Below, one piece after another: positions 19,132 through 53,906 of a stretch of DNA of 64,000 nt; within the stretch, counting starts at the first letter, position 1; every line of letters starts with the position of its first letter. Made by a program: the position numbers and the translations under genes. The stretch spans positions 5,952,001 through 6,016,000 of the forward strand of contig NEEC01000002.1 in assembly GCA_002189035.1 (NCBI GenBank), written 5' to 3'. The DNA is from Utricularia gibba. Its lineage: Eukaryota; Plantae; Magnoliophyta. The notes below the pieces were generated by a model, which saw only the letters and a program-made list of their open reading frames with translations, made no database searches and was not told the origin of the DNA.

Positions 19132-20321
19132 CGCGGCCTACTCGCACACTTCCGGCGGCGCCTGGAAGGATATATATAGGCGTGGGTAGGTGCCACAGGT
19201 ACACACACATTTATATTCACGCCTGAGGGGAAGGACAAGAGCGACGACGGGTTTGCGAAACTGGAGGTACGCATGTTTGAAAAGTCGAACACCACCAAAT
19301 CAATCACCGATCCCTCGCCCAGGTGTAAATGCAAACCCCTATTTTAATACATTCTTCTGAAAATTATTTGAATAGAGTTCAATTTTTAATTATACTTTTA
19401 AATATAATTTATTTTTTGAAGTGAATTGGATGTATCCGTAATGGTCATATATTTTTCTAATGAATTGAATTAGTTTTAATAAATTTATATTTATATTTTT
19501 AAATTATTTAAAAAATGAATATTATTTTTTAAACAAGTCGAATTTATTTTTCGATTGAACCGATTTGAATTAAATTGAATCCACTTTTGGATTAAATCTA
19601 TAATTGTCATATATATTTTTTTCATAATTTATTATCGATCACTAATTAAACCGAATGAATAATTCAACTTTCCAACATATATGATAACAAGTTATTTAGA
19701 AAAATGATTATTCATATAATATGTCTTACACTCAATGATCAATCACCACATTTCTAACATATCTTCAACTAACTCCAAAAAATTAAGTTATATTCTGTAA
19801 AATTTTTGAATTTTATTTTTATTTTTTATTAAAAATAATTTTATTTTACAACACTAACAATTGTAAAAATATTTTTATTAAAAAATACTTTTAAAATTAT
19901 ATTACAAAATTCATTTTTTTAAAAATAATAATTAATTTACTTTTACTTCTTATTTTTAATTTTTTAAAATAATTTTAAAAAACAAAAATATATTTCAAAA
20001 ATTTTTCAAAACACTTCTATATATTTTTTGTTATTGCATTTCTGTCTTGAGCATATAGAAATGTAGTAGAATGCGAACAACCTTCCCTTCGCCGGTGGTC
20101 GGATTGACGCCGCTGCCGCAAGTAGCAGCGGTGCACCCAGTCGCTATCGTTCTTGTTGGGTACGTGTAGGGGTGGCTGGCGGCGGCTTTCCGTCCATTTC
20201 CCCTACCAGGGACACGGAGGAACTTCAACTCCGACAAAGGGATGAAGTGGGTCTCCCAGCATGCGGCCATATTTAATTAAACAAAAGATAAAAGAGGAAG
20301 ATGTGTTGGCTAACCATTTGC

Positions 20322-20430: not shown

Positions 20431-21987
20431 ATGCCGCGGCAGGCGGAGGAGTTCCGCTTCTCGTCCCTCGACGACGCTCTCGAACACTACATCGGAGCGG
20501 TGACATGGAGCCAGCTTCTGCAGGTTGCCATCGTATCACTCGCGTGGTTCTTCGATGCTCAGCAAACCTTCATGGGTATCTTCACCGATGCGCAACCCAA
20601 ATGGGTTTGTCGTGACTCCACCGCTGAATTCCCCTGCAACTCCTCGAGCTCCACGTGTGATCTCCCCCCGGATTCATTTTCTTGGCTGTCGCCGTCTCAG
20701 TCCTCCACGATCTCCACATGGTCGCTCCAGTGCTCGGACGCCATCATCACTGCGCTTCCATCGTCATCTTTCTTCGCCGGAGCTATAGCCGGAGGATTAT
20801 TATTCTCCGCGGTATCGGATACCTTACTTGGCCGGAAAAGAATGCTGGTCCTGAGCTGTTTGTTGCTGTCCGCCGCCGGAGCGATAAGCGCAGCTTCGAT
20901 AAACATATGGATGTATTCCTGTCTCCGATTCATCAGCGGTATCGGCCGCAATATGATCGGAAGTTGCATTCTGGTTCACTCAGCAGAGCTTGTTGGAAAG
21001 AAAATGAGGCCAAGAGTTGGGGTATTTGGATTTGTATCCTTCAGTCTGGGATTCCTCTCGCTTCCATTGATAGCATTTGTGCTGAGAGAGAGATCCTGGA
21101 GACATCTATACCTTTGCACTTGCATCCCCGGCATTCTCTACTGTTTGATTCTCCAACTGTTCGTCGACGAGTCTCCCAGATGGCTGTTTGTGAAGAACAG
21201 GAAGACAGAATTTGCAGAGACCCTGTTGAGAATTTCCTCCCGGGACAGAAGCAGAGCTTGTGTAGCTGATCTAAGGGATTCGATAAACTGGGAGCTTGTG
21301 GAATCGGAAGAAAGCACCAGTTTCTACTCGATCAGGATCTTGTTGCAGGAAAAGTCTGTTCGGAAGAGATTCCTGGTTATCTCCGCCGCCTGCTTCAGTG
21401 TCGGGTTGGCGTACTACGGTTTTCCCTTCTCGCTCGGAAGCCTGTCCCTTAATCTGTACATCGGAGTGGCTTTAAACGCACTGATGGAATTCCCGGGGTC
21501 TCTTTTCACGTACATCTTTGTCGGGAGACTCGACCGGAGAATCGCAATCTTCGGATTGTCGGGTGCGAGCGGCGTCTGCAGTGTGGCAACTGCGGTGGTG
21601 AAGAACGAGAGTCTACAGACGGGGCTTGAGATTGTGGCGTTTACAATCGCCGTGACGGTGGCCAATTTTATTATGATATACGCTTTGGAGCTGTTTCCCA
21701 CGTGTGTGAGAAACTCCGGGATGGCGGCGGCGAGGCTCGCCGTGAACCTCGGCGGTGCTGTGTTTCAGGTGGTGACGGCGGTGGGAAATGGGAATGCTTC
21801 GGTTTCGTTTGTTGTAACCGGAGTCGCTATTTCTTCTTGTGCGGCGCTCGTTTACTGGCTGCCGGAGACGAGGGGTAGACAATGGAACGACCTCATTGAG
21901 GAGGAGAAGCAGGAACGACAAGGCTACCAATGCGTTCAGACAACCATAGAGGACGATGAGGGTAATAACGGAATTATCAGACGCTAA
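20431..21987 (+). CDS. OCT: Organic cation/carnitine transporter (MFS, OCT2/OCT3-like), intronless
   Basis: 518-aa ORF from ATG 20431 with SLDDALEHYIGAVTWSQLLQ, STISTWSLQC, LGRKRML, ESPRWL and ELFPTCVRNS signatures; about 12 hydrophobic segments. Confidence 0.93.
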   Translation: MPRQAEEFRFSSLDDALEHYIGAVTWSQLLQVAIVSLAWFFDAQQTFMGIFTDAQPKWVCRDSTAEFPCNSSSSTCDLPPDSFSWLSPSQSSTISTWSLQCSDAIITALPSSSFFAGAIAGGLLFSAVSDTLLGRKRMLVLSCLLLSAAGAISAASINIWMYSCLRFISGIGRNMIGSCILVHSAELVGKKMRPRVGVFGFVSFSLGFLSLPLIAFVLRERSWRHLYLCTCIPGILYCLILQLFVDESPRWLFVKNRKTEFAETLLRISSRDRSRACVADLRDSINWELVESEESTSFYSIRILLQEKSVRKRFLVISAACFSVGLAYYGFPFSLGSLSLNLYIGVALNALMEFPGSLFTYIFVGRLDRRIAIFGLSGASGVCSVATAVVKNESLQTGLEIVAFTIAVTVANFIMIYALELFPTCVRNSGMAAARLAVNLGGAVFQVVTAVGNGNASVSFVVTGVAISSCAALVYWLPETRGRQWNDLIEEEKQERQGYQCVQTTIEDDEGNNGIIRR

Positions 21988-22185
21988 AATTTCGAATTGT
22001 ACTTGAACATGTTCTGAACGAACCCTAATCCCAATTTTGCTCACGGACCACTAAACCCACCGTTTCCTGATCAAACCCCATACGTAACTCTTCGTTCGCC
22101 GCCGCCGCTGTCTCCACGCTGCAAAACTCCGGTAACGGTGACTACAATTAAAGAACATCAAATTTTGAAAACACAAATTCGAAGT

Positions 22186-22325
22186 AAATGTAGGCGCATC
22201 TGAATGCATCGGCCAAATCAAATAGAAGGGGATGCCAGAATCTCAGCGCCAGAATTCCGATATCGGCAACGTTCAGCGCTGTGTGCACAATTAAATGTGC
22301 AACAGTGACTCTAATTTGTTGCCTT
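22186..22325 (-). ncRNA. Box H/ACA snoRNA; 3' hairpin predicted to guide the conserved 5.8S rRNA pseudouridine (U78, recalled Arabidopsis numbering)
   Basis: Hairpin 1 has GGCAAC/GTTGCC and TGCACA/TGTGCA stems. Hairpin 2 has GGCGC/GCGCC and GCATC/GATGC stems followed by ACA-TTT (22191-22186). Pocket strands GATTCTG and ATTCA complement 5.8S UGAAU-[U G]-CAGAAUC, 14 nt from ACA. The H box is non-canonical (ATATCG). Confidence 0.75.
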
Positions 22326-22353
22326 GAAACAAATAGATCGATTCAAAATCAAA

Positions 22354-22441
22354 GGCTCAGATACGAAGGATTTAGTCAAATCAACGAGCCGTAATGCAGG
22401 CTCTCATCGTTTGATGGTATAGTTTATGTAACTTCATCGCC
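22354..22441 (-). ncRNA. Box C/D snoRNA predicted to guide 18S rRNA Um123 (snoR116-like, name from memory)
   Basis: GGC-GATGA...CTGA-GCC terminal stem with C and D boxes. TACCATCAAAC (22419-22409) is antisense to 18S GUUUGAUGGUA and precedes an ATGA D' box; the +5 rule gives U123. Confidence 0.8.
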
Positions 22442-22494
22442 AAAAGCAAAAACAAATCAAATCATGAAAAAAAGAGTGATCGAATCGCGGACAC

Positions 22495-22597
22495 AGGGAG
22501 ACCTCAGAAGGTAAATTTTGAAACATCACCAAAAACCTCTGGAAGAGATCAATGCTCAGATGGTACGGACAATTCAGATAGCATCACCGGCATCCCT
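22495..22597 (-). ncRNA. Box C/D snoRNA predicted to guide the 25S rRNA U in CUGGUACGGACAA (snoR117/U2103-like, name from memory)
   Basis: Terminal stem AGGGATGCC/GGTCTCCCT, C box GTGATGC, D' CTGA (22559-22556), C' GTGATGT, D CTGA (22507-22504). A 12-nt guide TTGTCCGTACCA is antisense to 25S UGGUACGGACAA. Confidence 0.82.
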
Positions 22598-22699
22598 CCG
22601 CCGACACATAGATTTGAAGGACGGTATGTTCTAGTAACAACATTTTGGGGTGTGTCTAGAGATGGAGGCGCTACTGGTCAGATATAAAAAGAAACAGAC

Positions 22700-22860
22700 G
22701 GAAACCCTACTAGATGATTTGGTCTACAAATTACTGGAATGCCCTCAGTGGGGGTTTACCGGGCCACGGGCTGGATACTGGGCCAACTCAGATCGCGGGG
22801 CGTTGTGGACTGGCCCCAATGATAAGTTACTGAGAGCCCAAAACTCCATATGAGCCCACT
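22700..22860 (-). promoter_or_regulatory. Probable snoRNA-cluster promoter with telo-box and site II elements
   Basis: AAACCCTA at 22702-22709, TGGGCC at 22779-22784 and further GGGCC/AGCCCA motifs; telo-box plus site II is the known signature of plant ribosome-biogenesis and snoRNA promoters. Confidence 0.5.
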
Positions 22861-23656
22861 TTCAGATTTGAATGAATTTTTATAATTTATTTAAATAATT
22901 ATGTTCACTTTTTAAAAATTTAATCTTTAACGATTTTGTAATAAAATTAAAAGTTCAAATTCTATAATTAACTTTAAAAATTATTAATTTTTTTAATTTC
23001 TATTTCAATAATTATATAAGATATTAATTATATTATTTATTATTTTATATTTTTAAAAATATATTTATAATATAATATAATATTATATAATAATTTAATA
23101 TATTAAAATATATAATATATATTTTATTTTATTAAATTTTATAAAATAATTTTATGTTGGTCTATAAAATAATTTACAATTTTAAAATGAACTTATTCAA
23201 ATAATCTTAAAATTAATTATATTTTAAAAAATATGAATACAATTTCAAATTATAGAATAATTTTTTAATTTTTAATTAATTCTAAATTAGATAGGAAAGA
23301 ATTTTAATTAATAAATTGCTATAAACATTTTAAAATATTAAATTTAAGTAATTATTTTATTTCTTATAAAAATACTAAAATGTGATTTTTTTTTGTTGTT
23401 CATTACTCATTGTATTATGATAAAAATTGACAAAAAAACCTGACTTAGCCAACCCAACAAAATGTAATCTTGATTTTGTAAGTGTGGCTTATGGGGTGTG
23501 TGTGTGCCTGAGAATCATCGAGTTATCTTCAACGCCACCCTCTTGACGATAAGAGACGACACTCTGCTGCCCACAGATCCTCATCATCACTCCATTTCGA
23601 TTATCCCTCTCGTTCCTCGATCAATCTCACTCGTTTCCCACAAATAATCTGAAGGA

Positions 23657-25743
23657 ATGGCGTCTACGGCCGCGTCTCTTGTCTTCTGTGGAATTCCCAA
23701 GAGTTCTGGGTCCGCGGCCATGGCTTCCCAGACCTTCCCCACAACGCGCTTTTACGGGAAGTCACGTCTGGGGTTCTCCGCCGGAGCCGCTGACCCACTT
23801 CTCGCCCAGGTCGTATCTACGAAGCAGGTGTCTTTCAAGTCAAAGCCTGTGAGGGGAGTTGTTTCCATGGCGAAGAAGAGCGTCGGCGATCTATCTGCCG
23901 TCGATCTTAAAGGGAAGAGGGTGTTTGTGAGGGCTGATCTCAATGTCCCACTCGATGATAGCCAGAATATTACTGATGATACGAGGATTAGAGCTGCGGT
24001 GCCCACCATCAAGCATTTGATCAGTAATGGAGCCAAAGTCATCCTTTCTAGCCACTTGGTGAGTTTGTTTGCGCAATATTCTTTTCAATTTTGTGTGGTT
24101 TCCTTGAATCCTTGATTCTAGAAAATGATGGCAAGTGAACTCTGGATTGCTCTCAGTTTCCGTAGGCAGCGTACCAAGTGTTTTAGTGACTTAGTCAAGA
24201 TTCTATAATTAGTTAGAAAATGTAAAGTGCTTCATTTAGCTTAACTCAGACTTATCTGCATTTTCTTGCAAAGTCACACATTTAGTTCTTTGCTCGTAGC
24301 CGTAAGTTGTGTGCTTTCCTCAGTTGAAGTATGAAGCTTGATTTTTGCTTGTTGCTCAGGGAAGACCAAAAGGTGTCACCCCAAAATACAGCCTCGCACC
24401 TCTTGTCCCCAGACTATCTGAACTGCTGGGAATTCAGGTAACTTTACTAGTCGAAAGTTTCAATCTTGAGAGTAAGGAAAGTGAAGATGAGATCTCAATA
24501 ATTCATTTTTCGCGTGATTCAACATGGGATTACAATGTGGCTGACTGCCTCAGGTTGTGAAAGCGGACGACTGCATCGGCCCAGAGGTTGAAAGCCTGGT
24601 GGCCTCGTTGCCGGATGGTGGGGTTCTCCTTCTTGAGAACGTGAGATTTTACAAGGAGGAAGAGAAGAATGAGCCCGAGTTTGCTCAAAAGCTTGCCTCA
24701 TTAGCAGATTTATACGTAAATGATGCATTTGGTACTGCACACAGAGCACATGCGTCCACTGAGGGAGTCACAAAGTTCTTGAAGCCTTCCGTTGCTGGTT
24801 TCCTTCTGCAGAAGGTTTCGTATAGCTACCTTCTTTGATGTTGAAAATGTGGTATTTTGGTTTCTCATCAGCTTTTCTGGATATCACAATCTAGGAACTA
24901 GACTACCTTGTTGGTGCCGTTTCTAGCCCCAAAAGGCCGTTTGCCGCCATAGTGGGTGGTTCCAAGGTGTCTTCCAAGATCGGAGTGATCGAGTCACTTC
25001 TTGAGAAAGTTGACATTTTGCTTCTTGGCGGGGGCATGATCTTCACATTCTACAAAGCACAAGGGCTGTCCGTCGGATCATCCCTGGTTGAAGAAGACAA
25101 GCTTGATCTTGCCACATCGCTCCTGGCGAAGGCGAAGGCAAAAGGTGTTGATCTCTTGCTTCCCACCGATGTCGTCATCGCTGACAAGTTCGCCCCAGAT
25201 GCAGAAAGCAAGGTCCTAAGCTTATCAACGCTATTTGTAACAGAATCCAGGTTCAGTGGCCTTGAAAATTGCTTCTTCTAACAGATTGTTCCCGCCTCTT
25301 CTATCCCGGATGGCTGGATGGGACTGGACATCGGACCGGACTCCATCAAAACATTCAGCGATGCCCTTGAGACGACGAAGACGGTGATCTGGAACGGACC
25401 CATGGGAGTGTTTGAGTTCGAGAAATTTGCAGTAGGCACAGAGGTATGCATGCCCTCCAGGTGTTCGCCGAAAGGCTGCTCTCAAGCTACGGTGTAATGT
25501 ATCACCATGCTTGCTCTGTGTCTAACACTGCAGGCCATCGCAAACAAGCTGGCAGATCTCAGTGGGAAGGGGGTGACGACAATCATCGGCGGCGGCGATT
25601 CAGTGGCTGCTGTGGAGAAGGTTGGTGTTGCGAATGTGATGAGCCACATTTCGACCGGCGGTGGTGCGAGTCTGGAGCTCCTGGAAGGGAAAGAGCTTCC
25701 GGGGGTGTTGGCCCTCGATGAGGCTGTCCCGGTGGCGGTTTGA
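23657..25743 (+). CDS. PGK: Phosphoglycerate kinase, chloroplastic
   Basis: Exons 23657-24058, 24360-24437, 24554-24814, 24895-25212, 25285-25443 and 25534-25743; transit peptide, [34 protein letters not shown] and [15 protein letters not shown]. Confidence 0.97.
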
Positions 25744-26016: not shown

Positions 26017-26029
26017 CAATACATATAAG

Positions 26030-26102
26030 CGATCGCGATGGGACTCGAACCCACAGTCTCCCGCTCCGGAGGCGAGCGCCTTATCCATTAGGCCACGCGA
26101 TC
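26030..26102 (-). tRNA. tRNA-Arg (anticodon CCG)
   Basis: 73 nt GATCGCG TGGCCTAATGGATAAGGC GCTCGC CT-CCG-GA GCGGG AGACTGTGG GTTCGAG TCCCAT CGCGATC G; 7-bp acceptor stem with A and B boxes. Confidence 0.97.
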
Positions 26103-30389: not shown

Positions 30390-30525
30390 ATTTTGGGCCT
30401 GATGGCCCATTTGGGCCTTTATGAGCCTTGCCCACTGTGAGGCTTATTTGGGCTTGTAATTTCAGACGCGGGCTACGTTTACTTAAACAATGGCCCATAA
30501 ATGGGTCCATTAGTAATGGGCCCAA
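30390..30525. promoter_or_regulatory. Cluster of TGGGCY (site II / proteasome-related cis-element-like) motifs upstream of the proteasome gene
   Basis: At least six TGGGCC/TGGGCT/GGCCCA motifs within 135 bp, just before the 5'UTR of the alpha-2 subunit gene. Confidence 0.55.
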
Positions 30526-41573: not shown

Positions 41574-44126
<2,553 letters not shown>

Positions 44127-52241: not shown

Positions 52242-53906
52242 AACATATTTATATCTTCACATTGAATTTTAAAATACATAAGTTAAACTATTAAATTATA
52301 TAATATGATTTCAGATTATATCATAAAATAATTTTATAATTTCAAATTAATTATATTCATATAATTTCAAAAATGATAATATTTTATATAATCCAAAACA
52401 TACACCCTATGTGACAATTTTGGCCATTCTGAATACTAAATCATTTATTCAATGTATAAGATATAAAATAAGGATGATAAATTTTATAAATAACTGTGTG
52501 ATGGTTCATTATTCACAATCCCTTGACCAAAAAAAAAAACATACACACTCATGAATGAGAAAAAAGCAGTAGTAGAGGGCAATAAATGCATTCAACTAAA
52601 TTTATTGGCATTCATTGACACTATTTATATCATCTCATGAGTGATGGACATTATTTTTTTGTATACTTTTTTATATTATATTTTATATTACTAAGGATGT
52701 GTGTAATTGAAAATTGCATTTAGTAAATAGCTTTTACAAATATGATTTAAATTTTATTGTGTTTTTGGTAGATATATTTAAAGTAAACGAAAAAAAATTA
52801 AAACTTATTTGAAATAAAAGCCTTGTTATATAAAATTGGTGCAAGAAGGTGATATAATCATGGTTTTTGTTAACCATGGTTGAGTTTCCAGGGTTGCAAG
52901 AAGAGCCCAATTAGGCGTTTTTGCTTGCCCAGTCTTCTGGAGCAATTTATCCGTTGGGCCTAAGGCCCATTAACTTCTCTTTTTCCATCTTTTCTTTTTG
53001 TTGAAGACAAAATGGAATTAGATATTGTCTTTCTCTTTCTCTTTTTCTTTTGATAGTAAAACGTGATATGATAAAATGTAATATAAATTATGTAAATAAA
53101 TAAAGTATAAAATATGTTTGATTAGTGAGTCAATTACAAATTTAATTATATTTACTTTCTATTTAACAAACTAAAAGTAAAATTGTACATTGAAAATGAG
53201 GAGTTTTGTCACATAAATTTAATTATTCGACTATATTTCTAAATACCCTTGATTACTAGTACATATTTATGATATAAACAATTATTTTAATTAAAAACTT
53301 ATATTTCTATAATGAAAATGTCATTTATAGAAAAAAATTAATTTTAAATTCAATAAATAGAATTTTATATTTTGATTTTTGTATAGAACTATACCAACCA
53401 AGTCTAATAGGGAAAAGTATTTGCTTCTCTTATATCTTGTTTTAACATCTACCAAATAAGCCAATTAGCGTAAAGGAAACGAAAAGGCAAAGGTTAGTTT
53501 TTTTTTATAGGGATGAGAAGTACAAGGAGACATGGTGTTTAGTTGATGAGAATAGTATTTAATTATGGGGATTAAATAATTTTAAAATAAAGTAAAATAG
53601 AATATAATTTAAATAAATTTATGTAAATAAAATAAAAAAAACTGCTAAAATTCTGAACTTATTTAATACTAGTAACTAAACATTCTATAATTTATAATTT
53701 TACTTTTAAATTCATGTAATCCTATCAACGAAATATCATCCAATTTTTAGGTTTGCTTTGGCGCAATACAAAAACAAAATTTAAATTTTAAAAGCATTAC
53801 GATAATTAATTGTTCTCCTAAAAGTAAGGATTAAATATTTAAACGGTTAATAAACTAATACATGATCACTAAACAAGCATTAGGGTGCCGAGAGAGAAGG
53901 CGATGT

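Follow-up and report, generated by a model that had tools for sequence, protein, structure and literature searches.

A plant gene predicted to encode three snoRNAs in the interval separating transporter and phosphoglycerate kinase genes

Does the DNA that separates a transporter gene from a phosphoglycerate kinase (PGK) gene hold a gene of its own? An earlier note on this DNA had placed two box C/D snoRNAs and one box H/ACA snoRNA in it, all on the minus strand. We read the minus strand of 22186-22860 letter by letter and scanned the window (the whole stretch of DNA analysed, 64 kb) with Rfam at gathering thresholds, which returned three matches: one tRNA, snoR116 and snoR117. The two flanking genes are those that had been named. 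A single-exon, organic cation/carnitine transporter-like MFS gene lies on the plus strand at 20431-21987 (PF00083, PF07690); its best matches are OCT3-like proteins of Lamiales, at ~49% identity. On the other side, an open reading frame starting at 23657 on the plus strand carries a PGK domain (PF00162, E 9e-21) and represents the first exon of a PGK gene with an N-terminal extension (23657-24085). Judged by its sequence, the gap between them holds a real plant gene with three predicted snoRNAs on the minus strand. This gene is convergent with the transporter gene and divergent from the PGK gene.

The transporter stop codon is separated from the 3′ end of the H/ACA RNA by 198 nt, in agreement with the convergent distance of about 200 bp given before. 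We read a plus-strand AATTAAA near 22146, which suggests a transporter 3′ UTR that may terminate not far from the snoRNA gene, and with a convergent layout at 198 nt the two transcripts could overlap. Intergenic DNA at 19400-20000 and 22900-23400 is extremely AT-rich (5-20% GC) and the genes have 45-59% GC, a contrast that makes blocks of gene plus promoter sharply distinct in the window. Together with the Lamiales-like transporter at ~49% identity, the AT-rich intergenic DNA suggests a compact, fast-evolving asterid genome.

The first RNA in the direction of transcription is snoR117 (22592-22499, minus strand), a full-length match to RF01423 with 44.3 bits against a gathering threshold of 42 (E 2.3e-6, whole window). 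It has a C box GUGAUGC (22587-22581), a D′ guide (22572-22561) followed by the D′ box CUGA (22559-22556), and a D box CUGA (22507-22504). Its guide is invariant in our alignment of snoR117 sequences (A2), in which the body of the window copy shows an insertion of 10-13 nt. The second RNA is snoR116 (22442-22353, minus strand), again matched over its full length (RF01422, 48.9 bits versus a gathering threshold of 47, E 1e-6, whole window). Its C box is imperfect: the best reading, GCGAUGA at 22440-22434, has one mismatch to RUGAUGA, and the Rfam alignment is poor at this place. The D′ guide (22420-22408) is invariant in the snoR116 alignment (A3) and adjoins the D′ box AUGA (22407-22404); the D box is CUGA (22360-22357). 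When 21900-23000 was scanned at E<=10, a plus-strand snoR116 match of 20.6 bits and other weak matches (trypanosomatid mitochondrial LSU in AT-rich DNA; mir-7918) also appeared, all of which we regard as noise.

The third element, a box H/ACA snoRNA of 140 nt (22325-22186, minus strand), matched no Rfam family in the same scan of 21900-23000, even at E<=10. We therefore turned to a covariance model (R1) built on an alignment (A4) of nine plant H/ACA copies from outside the window, all located downstream of snoR117/snoR116. The model matches 22186-22325 on the minus strand with 111.8 bits (E 8.6e-26), and this is its sole match in the 64 kb window. Rfam, to which the earlier note had looked for support, thus backs both C/D RNAs above gathering, and the third element stands on model R1. 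The order C/D, C/D, H/ACA on the minus strand is confirmed by the two kinds of model, with boundaries within a few bases of those first proposed.

The H/ACA RNA can be read as two hairpins with the expected boxes. The 5′ hairpin (22323-22265) contains the pocket strands 22317-22306 and 22278-22271 and is followed by the H box AUAUCG (22263-22258); the 3′ hairpin (22250-22193) contains the pocket strands 22245-22236 and 22205-22198 and is followed by the ACA box (22191-22189) and then by UUU, with which the conserved part of the alignment stops and where the 3′ end is predicted. In our reading the pockets lie 15 nt upstream of the H box and 14 nt upstream of the ACA box, the rule being 14-16 nt. 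The H box fits ANANNR, the rule given by Chen & Wu for plant H/ACA RNAs (PMC2685112), but not the strict ANANNA, its sixth position being non-canonical; in other plants, copies of type a read ACACCA at this place. In an alignment of ten distinct H/ACA sequences, that of the window included (A1), hardly any change is seen in the lower stem of hairpin 1, the four pocket strands or the ACA tail, and the upper stems and loops vary. The canonical hairpin-hinge-hairpin-tail fold comprises 27 pairs, for which 93.2% of the alignment cells are paired; with the partners displaced by one to three columns, only 30-50% of cells pair. Five pairs are changed on both sides, and none of 500 shuffles reaches any of five measures of the fold. 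In the upper stem of hairpin 1 of the window copy, 4 of 10 pairs are doubly changed with pairing retained. Such compensatory changes in the stems, combined with fixed guides, point to selection.

Energy alone would give another structure: the canonical fold of the window RNA has –35.2 kcal/mol, and the unconstrained minimum is a non-canonical fold of –40.2 kcal/mol with a z-score of only –1.76. We gave the latter no weight in judging the canonical fold, since binding to rRNA requires unpaired pocket strands. The RNAalifold and single-sequence minimum-energy folds, which pair the pocket strands with each other, were not taken as the biological fold.

The arrangement has a known counterpart. Chromosome 1 of Arabidopsis carries the cluster snoR117/snoR116/snoR85a/snoR85b (Kim et al., 2010; PMC2875012), snoR85 being At1g09873. 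The order (C/D, C/D, H/ACA), the D′ guides and their targets are the same as in the window, and the Arabidopsis snoR85a and snoR85b are H/ACA RNAs of 139 and 140 nt (PMC2875012), as compared with 140 nt here. The two loci differ in that Arabidopsis has two H/ACA copies and the window one, and in their neighbouring genes. Over a short distance the sequence, too, is consistent with a link to snoR85: stem-loop primers for Arabidopsis snoR85 (PMC8327949, supplement) give roughly its last 23 bases, GTGCATTCAAAGCCCTT then ACATGT, and this 3′ end, known over ~23 primer-derived nt only, has GTGCATTCA as well as the ACA tail in common with the H/ACA family of the window. The shared string covers the last part of the upper stem and the beginning of the 3′ pocket strand. 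The window H/ACA RNA is therefore a probable snoR85 orthologue, mainly by cluster position and size and in addition by these 23 nt.

Further relatives were sought by DNA pattern, and the invariant snoR117 guide led to 12 plant contigs in a metagenome collection (L064-L075). In 11 of the 12, snoR117 is followed by snoR116. Downstream of snoR116 these loci have an H/ACA copy, a, which clearly resembles the element of the window, and further on a copy b, so that the pair mirrors snoR85a/b of Arabidopsis. The order of the RNAs, the promoter (site II, then telo-box) and the guide strands are as in the window and the spacing is similar; the number of H/ACA copies is two or three versus one. Neither a transporter nor a PGK gene was found in the flanks of these loci. 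We conclude, with a probability of about 0.9, that the window contains an independent plant gene for three snoRNAs, orthologous to the Arabidopsis snoR117/snoR116/snoR85 cluster. The mixed composition put forward before stands, though not as a new kind of cluster: since Arabidopsis already has the same one, the window locus is just another case of a plant snoRNA cluster already described, and an annotation gain, not a discovery. The gain is that a seemingly empty gap holds what looks like a working gene for three guide RNAs, preceded by a conserved promoter of the ribosome-biogenesis type.

A cluster of this kind might still be a decaying copy, in which at least one RNA gene has turned into a pseudogene without a working snoRNP, snoR116 or snoR117 being the likeliest. 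Both C/D scores in the window are only 2 bits over gathering, versus 68-89 bits for the copies in other plants, and the mismatch in the snoR116 C box and the insertion in the snoR117 body fit such a course. However, no damage is seen in the D′ guides or in the D′ and D boxes, all of which match their counterparts in distant plants exactly, and the H/ACA stems have changed compensatorily around fixed guides. The neighbouring transporter likewise shares only ~49% identity with its nearest relatives, so rapid change may be a trait of the whole lineage, and within the 64 kb window the covariance model finds no second H/ACA copy. We consider decay improbable; the intact guides and compensatory stem changes argue for function.

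The sequence upstream of the cluster contains what could be its promoter. A telo-box lies 110 nt upstream of snoR117, at 22702-22709 (minus strand; AAACCCTA on the plus strand, transcribed-strand reading TAGGGTTT). Three site II motifs (TGGGCY) form the upstream part of the predicted promoter (22779-22784, 22835-22840 and 22853-22858, minus strand), where about 0.06 would be expected in 80 bp at the window-wide rate. The telo-box/site II block that had been reported upstream of the cluster is thus present, all three site II motifs falling within 22779-22858. There are only two telo-box copies in the 64 kb window. As both motifs, telo-box and site II, have window-wide counts at chance level, it is the local arrangement that matters. 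The same arrangement, site II then telo-box in the same orientation, occurs 156-255 nt upstream of snoR117 in 11 of 11 related loci, and it corresponds to the TeloSII promoter type of plant polycistronic snoRNA genes and ribosomal protein genes (PMC4660826). By our reading, a TATA-like TTATAT (22682-22687, minus strand) follows 90-95 nt upstream of where snoR117 begins at its 5′ side; the same hexamer is one of the TATA variants employed in PMC4660826.

The spacers are U-rich, as described before: spacer 1 (22498-22443, minus strand) has 56 nt and 52% U, spacer 2 (22352-22326, minus strand) 27 nt and 56% U. From their shortness and their lack of promoter motifs we infer a single tricistronic precursor. 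RNA polymerase II would start near 22650, downstream of the site II/telo-box/TATA promoter, and run leftward; nucleases would then cleave within the U-rich spacers, and their trimming of the fragments would yield the three mature RNAs. That each RNA instead has its own promoter, or that all are part of a longer host transcript, is also improbable, for although some plant snoRNAs are single genes or intronic, neither of these short spacers contains a telo-box, site II or TATA motif, the sole promoter-like block is the one upstream of snoR117, conserved in the 11 related loci, and no minus-strand ORF with homology was seen around the cluster.

What would the products of a tricistronic gene modify? 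The window is without rDNA, and the guides were checked against the rRNA of other plants. A search with a plant 5.8S pattern recovered 63 plant rDNA contigs (L001-L063) within 63 representative bacterial genome assemblies; these contigs look like host or laboratory contamination. The 18S, 5.8S and 25S rRNAs were delimited by Rfam in three of them (L008, L062, L001), the remaining contigs having matched the 5.8S pattern only; the assemblies that contain L008 and L062 belong to bacteria whose descriptions name them as leaf-nodule symbionts. Controls consisted of 1000 shuffles, in which Watson-Crick pairs only were counted. Each 25S target string is found in 24 of the 25 contigs that reach far enough into 25S, and the full 18S target 13-mer in 16 of the 33 that reach that part of 18S. 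The 5.8S target string occurs in 63 of 63 contigs, a count that is not independent since the string is part of the search pattern. A collection of viral contigs scanned for the 5.8S target and the snoR116 guide gave no match.

Both D′ guides fit rRNA well. That of snoR117 forms 12 Watson-Crick pairs with 25S 2111-2122 (1 of 1000 shuffles equal; L008 and L062 rRNA). The fifth base upstream of its D′ box lies opposite 25S U2114/U2116 (L008 and L062 rRNA), and the guide would accordingly be predicted to direct 2′-O-methylation of 25S U2114. Methylation of this base was detected in Arabidopsis by RiboMeth-seq (Wu et al., 2021; PMC8053127), and the D′ guide of Arabidopsis snoR117 is assigned to 25S Um2103 (Kim et al., 2010; PMC2875012), U2103 of the older numbering being U2114 of the newer one (offset 11). 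The snoR116 D′ guide forms 12 Watson-Crick pairs and one G-U pair with 18S 119-131 (1 of 1000 shuffles equal; L008, L062). Here the fifth base upstream of D′ (AUGA) is opposite 18S U123, the methylation of which this guide would direct; U123 methylation was likewise detected in Arabidopsis by RiboMeth-seq (Wu et al., 2021; PMC8053127), and Um123 is the target given for the D′ guide of Arabidopsis snoR116 (Kim et al., 2010; PMC2875012). Chen & Wu (2009) list the same C/D targets for snoR116 and snoR117 as Kim et al. For the guides upstream of the D boxes of the two C/D RNAs, the best rRNA pairings (8 bp and 7 bp) are not significant, with 445/1000 and 912/1000 shuffles equal. A pairing of the snoR117 D guide with 18S (14 pairs including G-U) was rejected, the methylated base lying at the duplex edge.

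The 3′ pocket of the H/ACA RNA forms 5+7 = 12 Watson-Crick pairs with 5.8S UGAAU-UG-CAGAAUC, a fit equalled by none of 1000 shuffles (L008, L062), and would direct modification of the 5.8S U preceding G79. The 25S, 18S and 5.8S pairings attributed to the three RNAs in the earlier note are thereby borne out on the rRNA of other plants; a fourth site, in the 5′ pocket, had been missed. This pocket pairs with 25S AGC-UU-GACUCUAGU through 3+9 pairs with one G-U (10 Watson-Crick; 16 of 1000 shuffles equal), and the predicted modified base is 25S U2417. Its left arm is short, with 3 pairs, a G.G mismatch and 3 more pairs. As an H/ACA RNA with two pockets adds two sites to those of the C/D RNAs, the cluster would address four sites, not three. 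The proposed interpretation of the locus is otherwise supported, as far as pairing and conservation can tell.

Both pocket sites can be placed on known maps. Since the targeted 5.8S U precedes a G and 5.8S psi78 adjoins Gm79 (Streit & Schleiff, 2021; PMC8351944), the predicted 5.8S site is psi78. With the offset of 11 seen at the snoR117 site (2103 versus 2114), 25S U2417 is U2406 of the older numbering, and the U five bases downstream of it matches Um2411 (2422 in the newer numbering), in agreement with that offset. In the supplementary tables of Streit & Schleiff (PMC8351944), 5.8S U78 and 25S U2406 are listed as mapped by Sun et al. (2019), with the guide given as ‘nd’; they are equated with yeast U73 and U2416, respectively, the Arabidopsis 5.8S site being the uracil adjacent to the yeast one. 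The sites that the two pockets fit are thus equivalent to those of yeast snR43 (5.8S psi73) and snR11 (25S psi2416), two separate snoRNAs as opposed to one RNA with both pockets in the window. According to the same authors an snR43 equivalent was not identifiable in Arabidopsis, and snoR85 is absent from their tables (PMC8351944).

Mapped pseudouridines make up ~80 of roughly 1,180 uridines, which makes it unlikely (roughly 0.5%) that two independent pockets would both fall on mapped sites by chance. The H/ACA RNA of the conserved cluster, the snoR85 family, may then be the missing plant guide for 5.8S psi78 and 25S psi2406 (U2417). We put this forward tentatively, as an assignment with somewhat worse than even odds. 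If it is true, one plant RNA does the work of two yeast snoRNAs, snR43 and snR11. The latter is what we take to be the guide of yeast 25S psi2416. Our literature search found no target assigned to snoR85, and the original description was outside its reach. That description is reportedly the one by Marker et al. in 2002, and both targets may already be proposed there. The gain is modest: an H/ACA family absent from Rfam, with two pockets that are conserved in distant plants and fit mapped pseudouridines listed without a guide.

The metagenome loci show some variation of their own. In one type of locus, copy b (L068:3368-3507, L070:1060-1199, L074:254-393) is altered in both strands of the 3′ pocket, with GATTCTG changed to GATTATA and ATTCAGAT to CTTCAGAA; the fit to 5.8S is lost and the 5′ pocket is kept. 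These copies may be re-aimed or decaying. A third, much weaker H/ACA relative lies further downstream in two contigs (L071:2485-2623 and L064:4388-4528; 52 and 46 bits with R1). The stretch from GGCGATGATAA, right behind copy a, resembles the start of another C/D RNA. One contig, L065, has two snoR117 copies (717-797 and 1648-1729) separated by ~900 nt, and no match to snoR116 reaches the gathering score there; this is a different arrangement, and the plant may belong to a different lineage.

Elsewhere in the window, the tRNA found by Rfam is a tRNA-Arg (CCG) gene at 26029-26102 on the minus strand (63.7 bits at 26030-26102; ARAGORN concurs). It lies ~290 nt downstream of the point, near 25743, at which the last PGK-like ORF ends. 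Further clusters of site II motifs (TGGGCY) occur at 30394-30524 (8 motifs), 41645-41835 (4) and 52904-52969 (3), and may mark promoters of ribosome-related genes or of further snoRNA genes.
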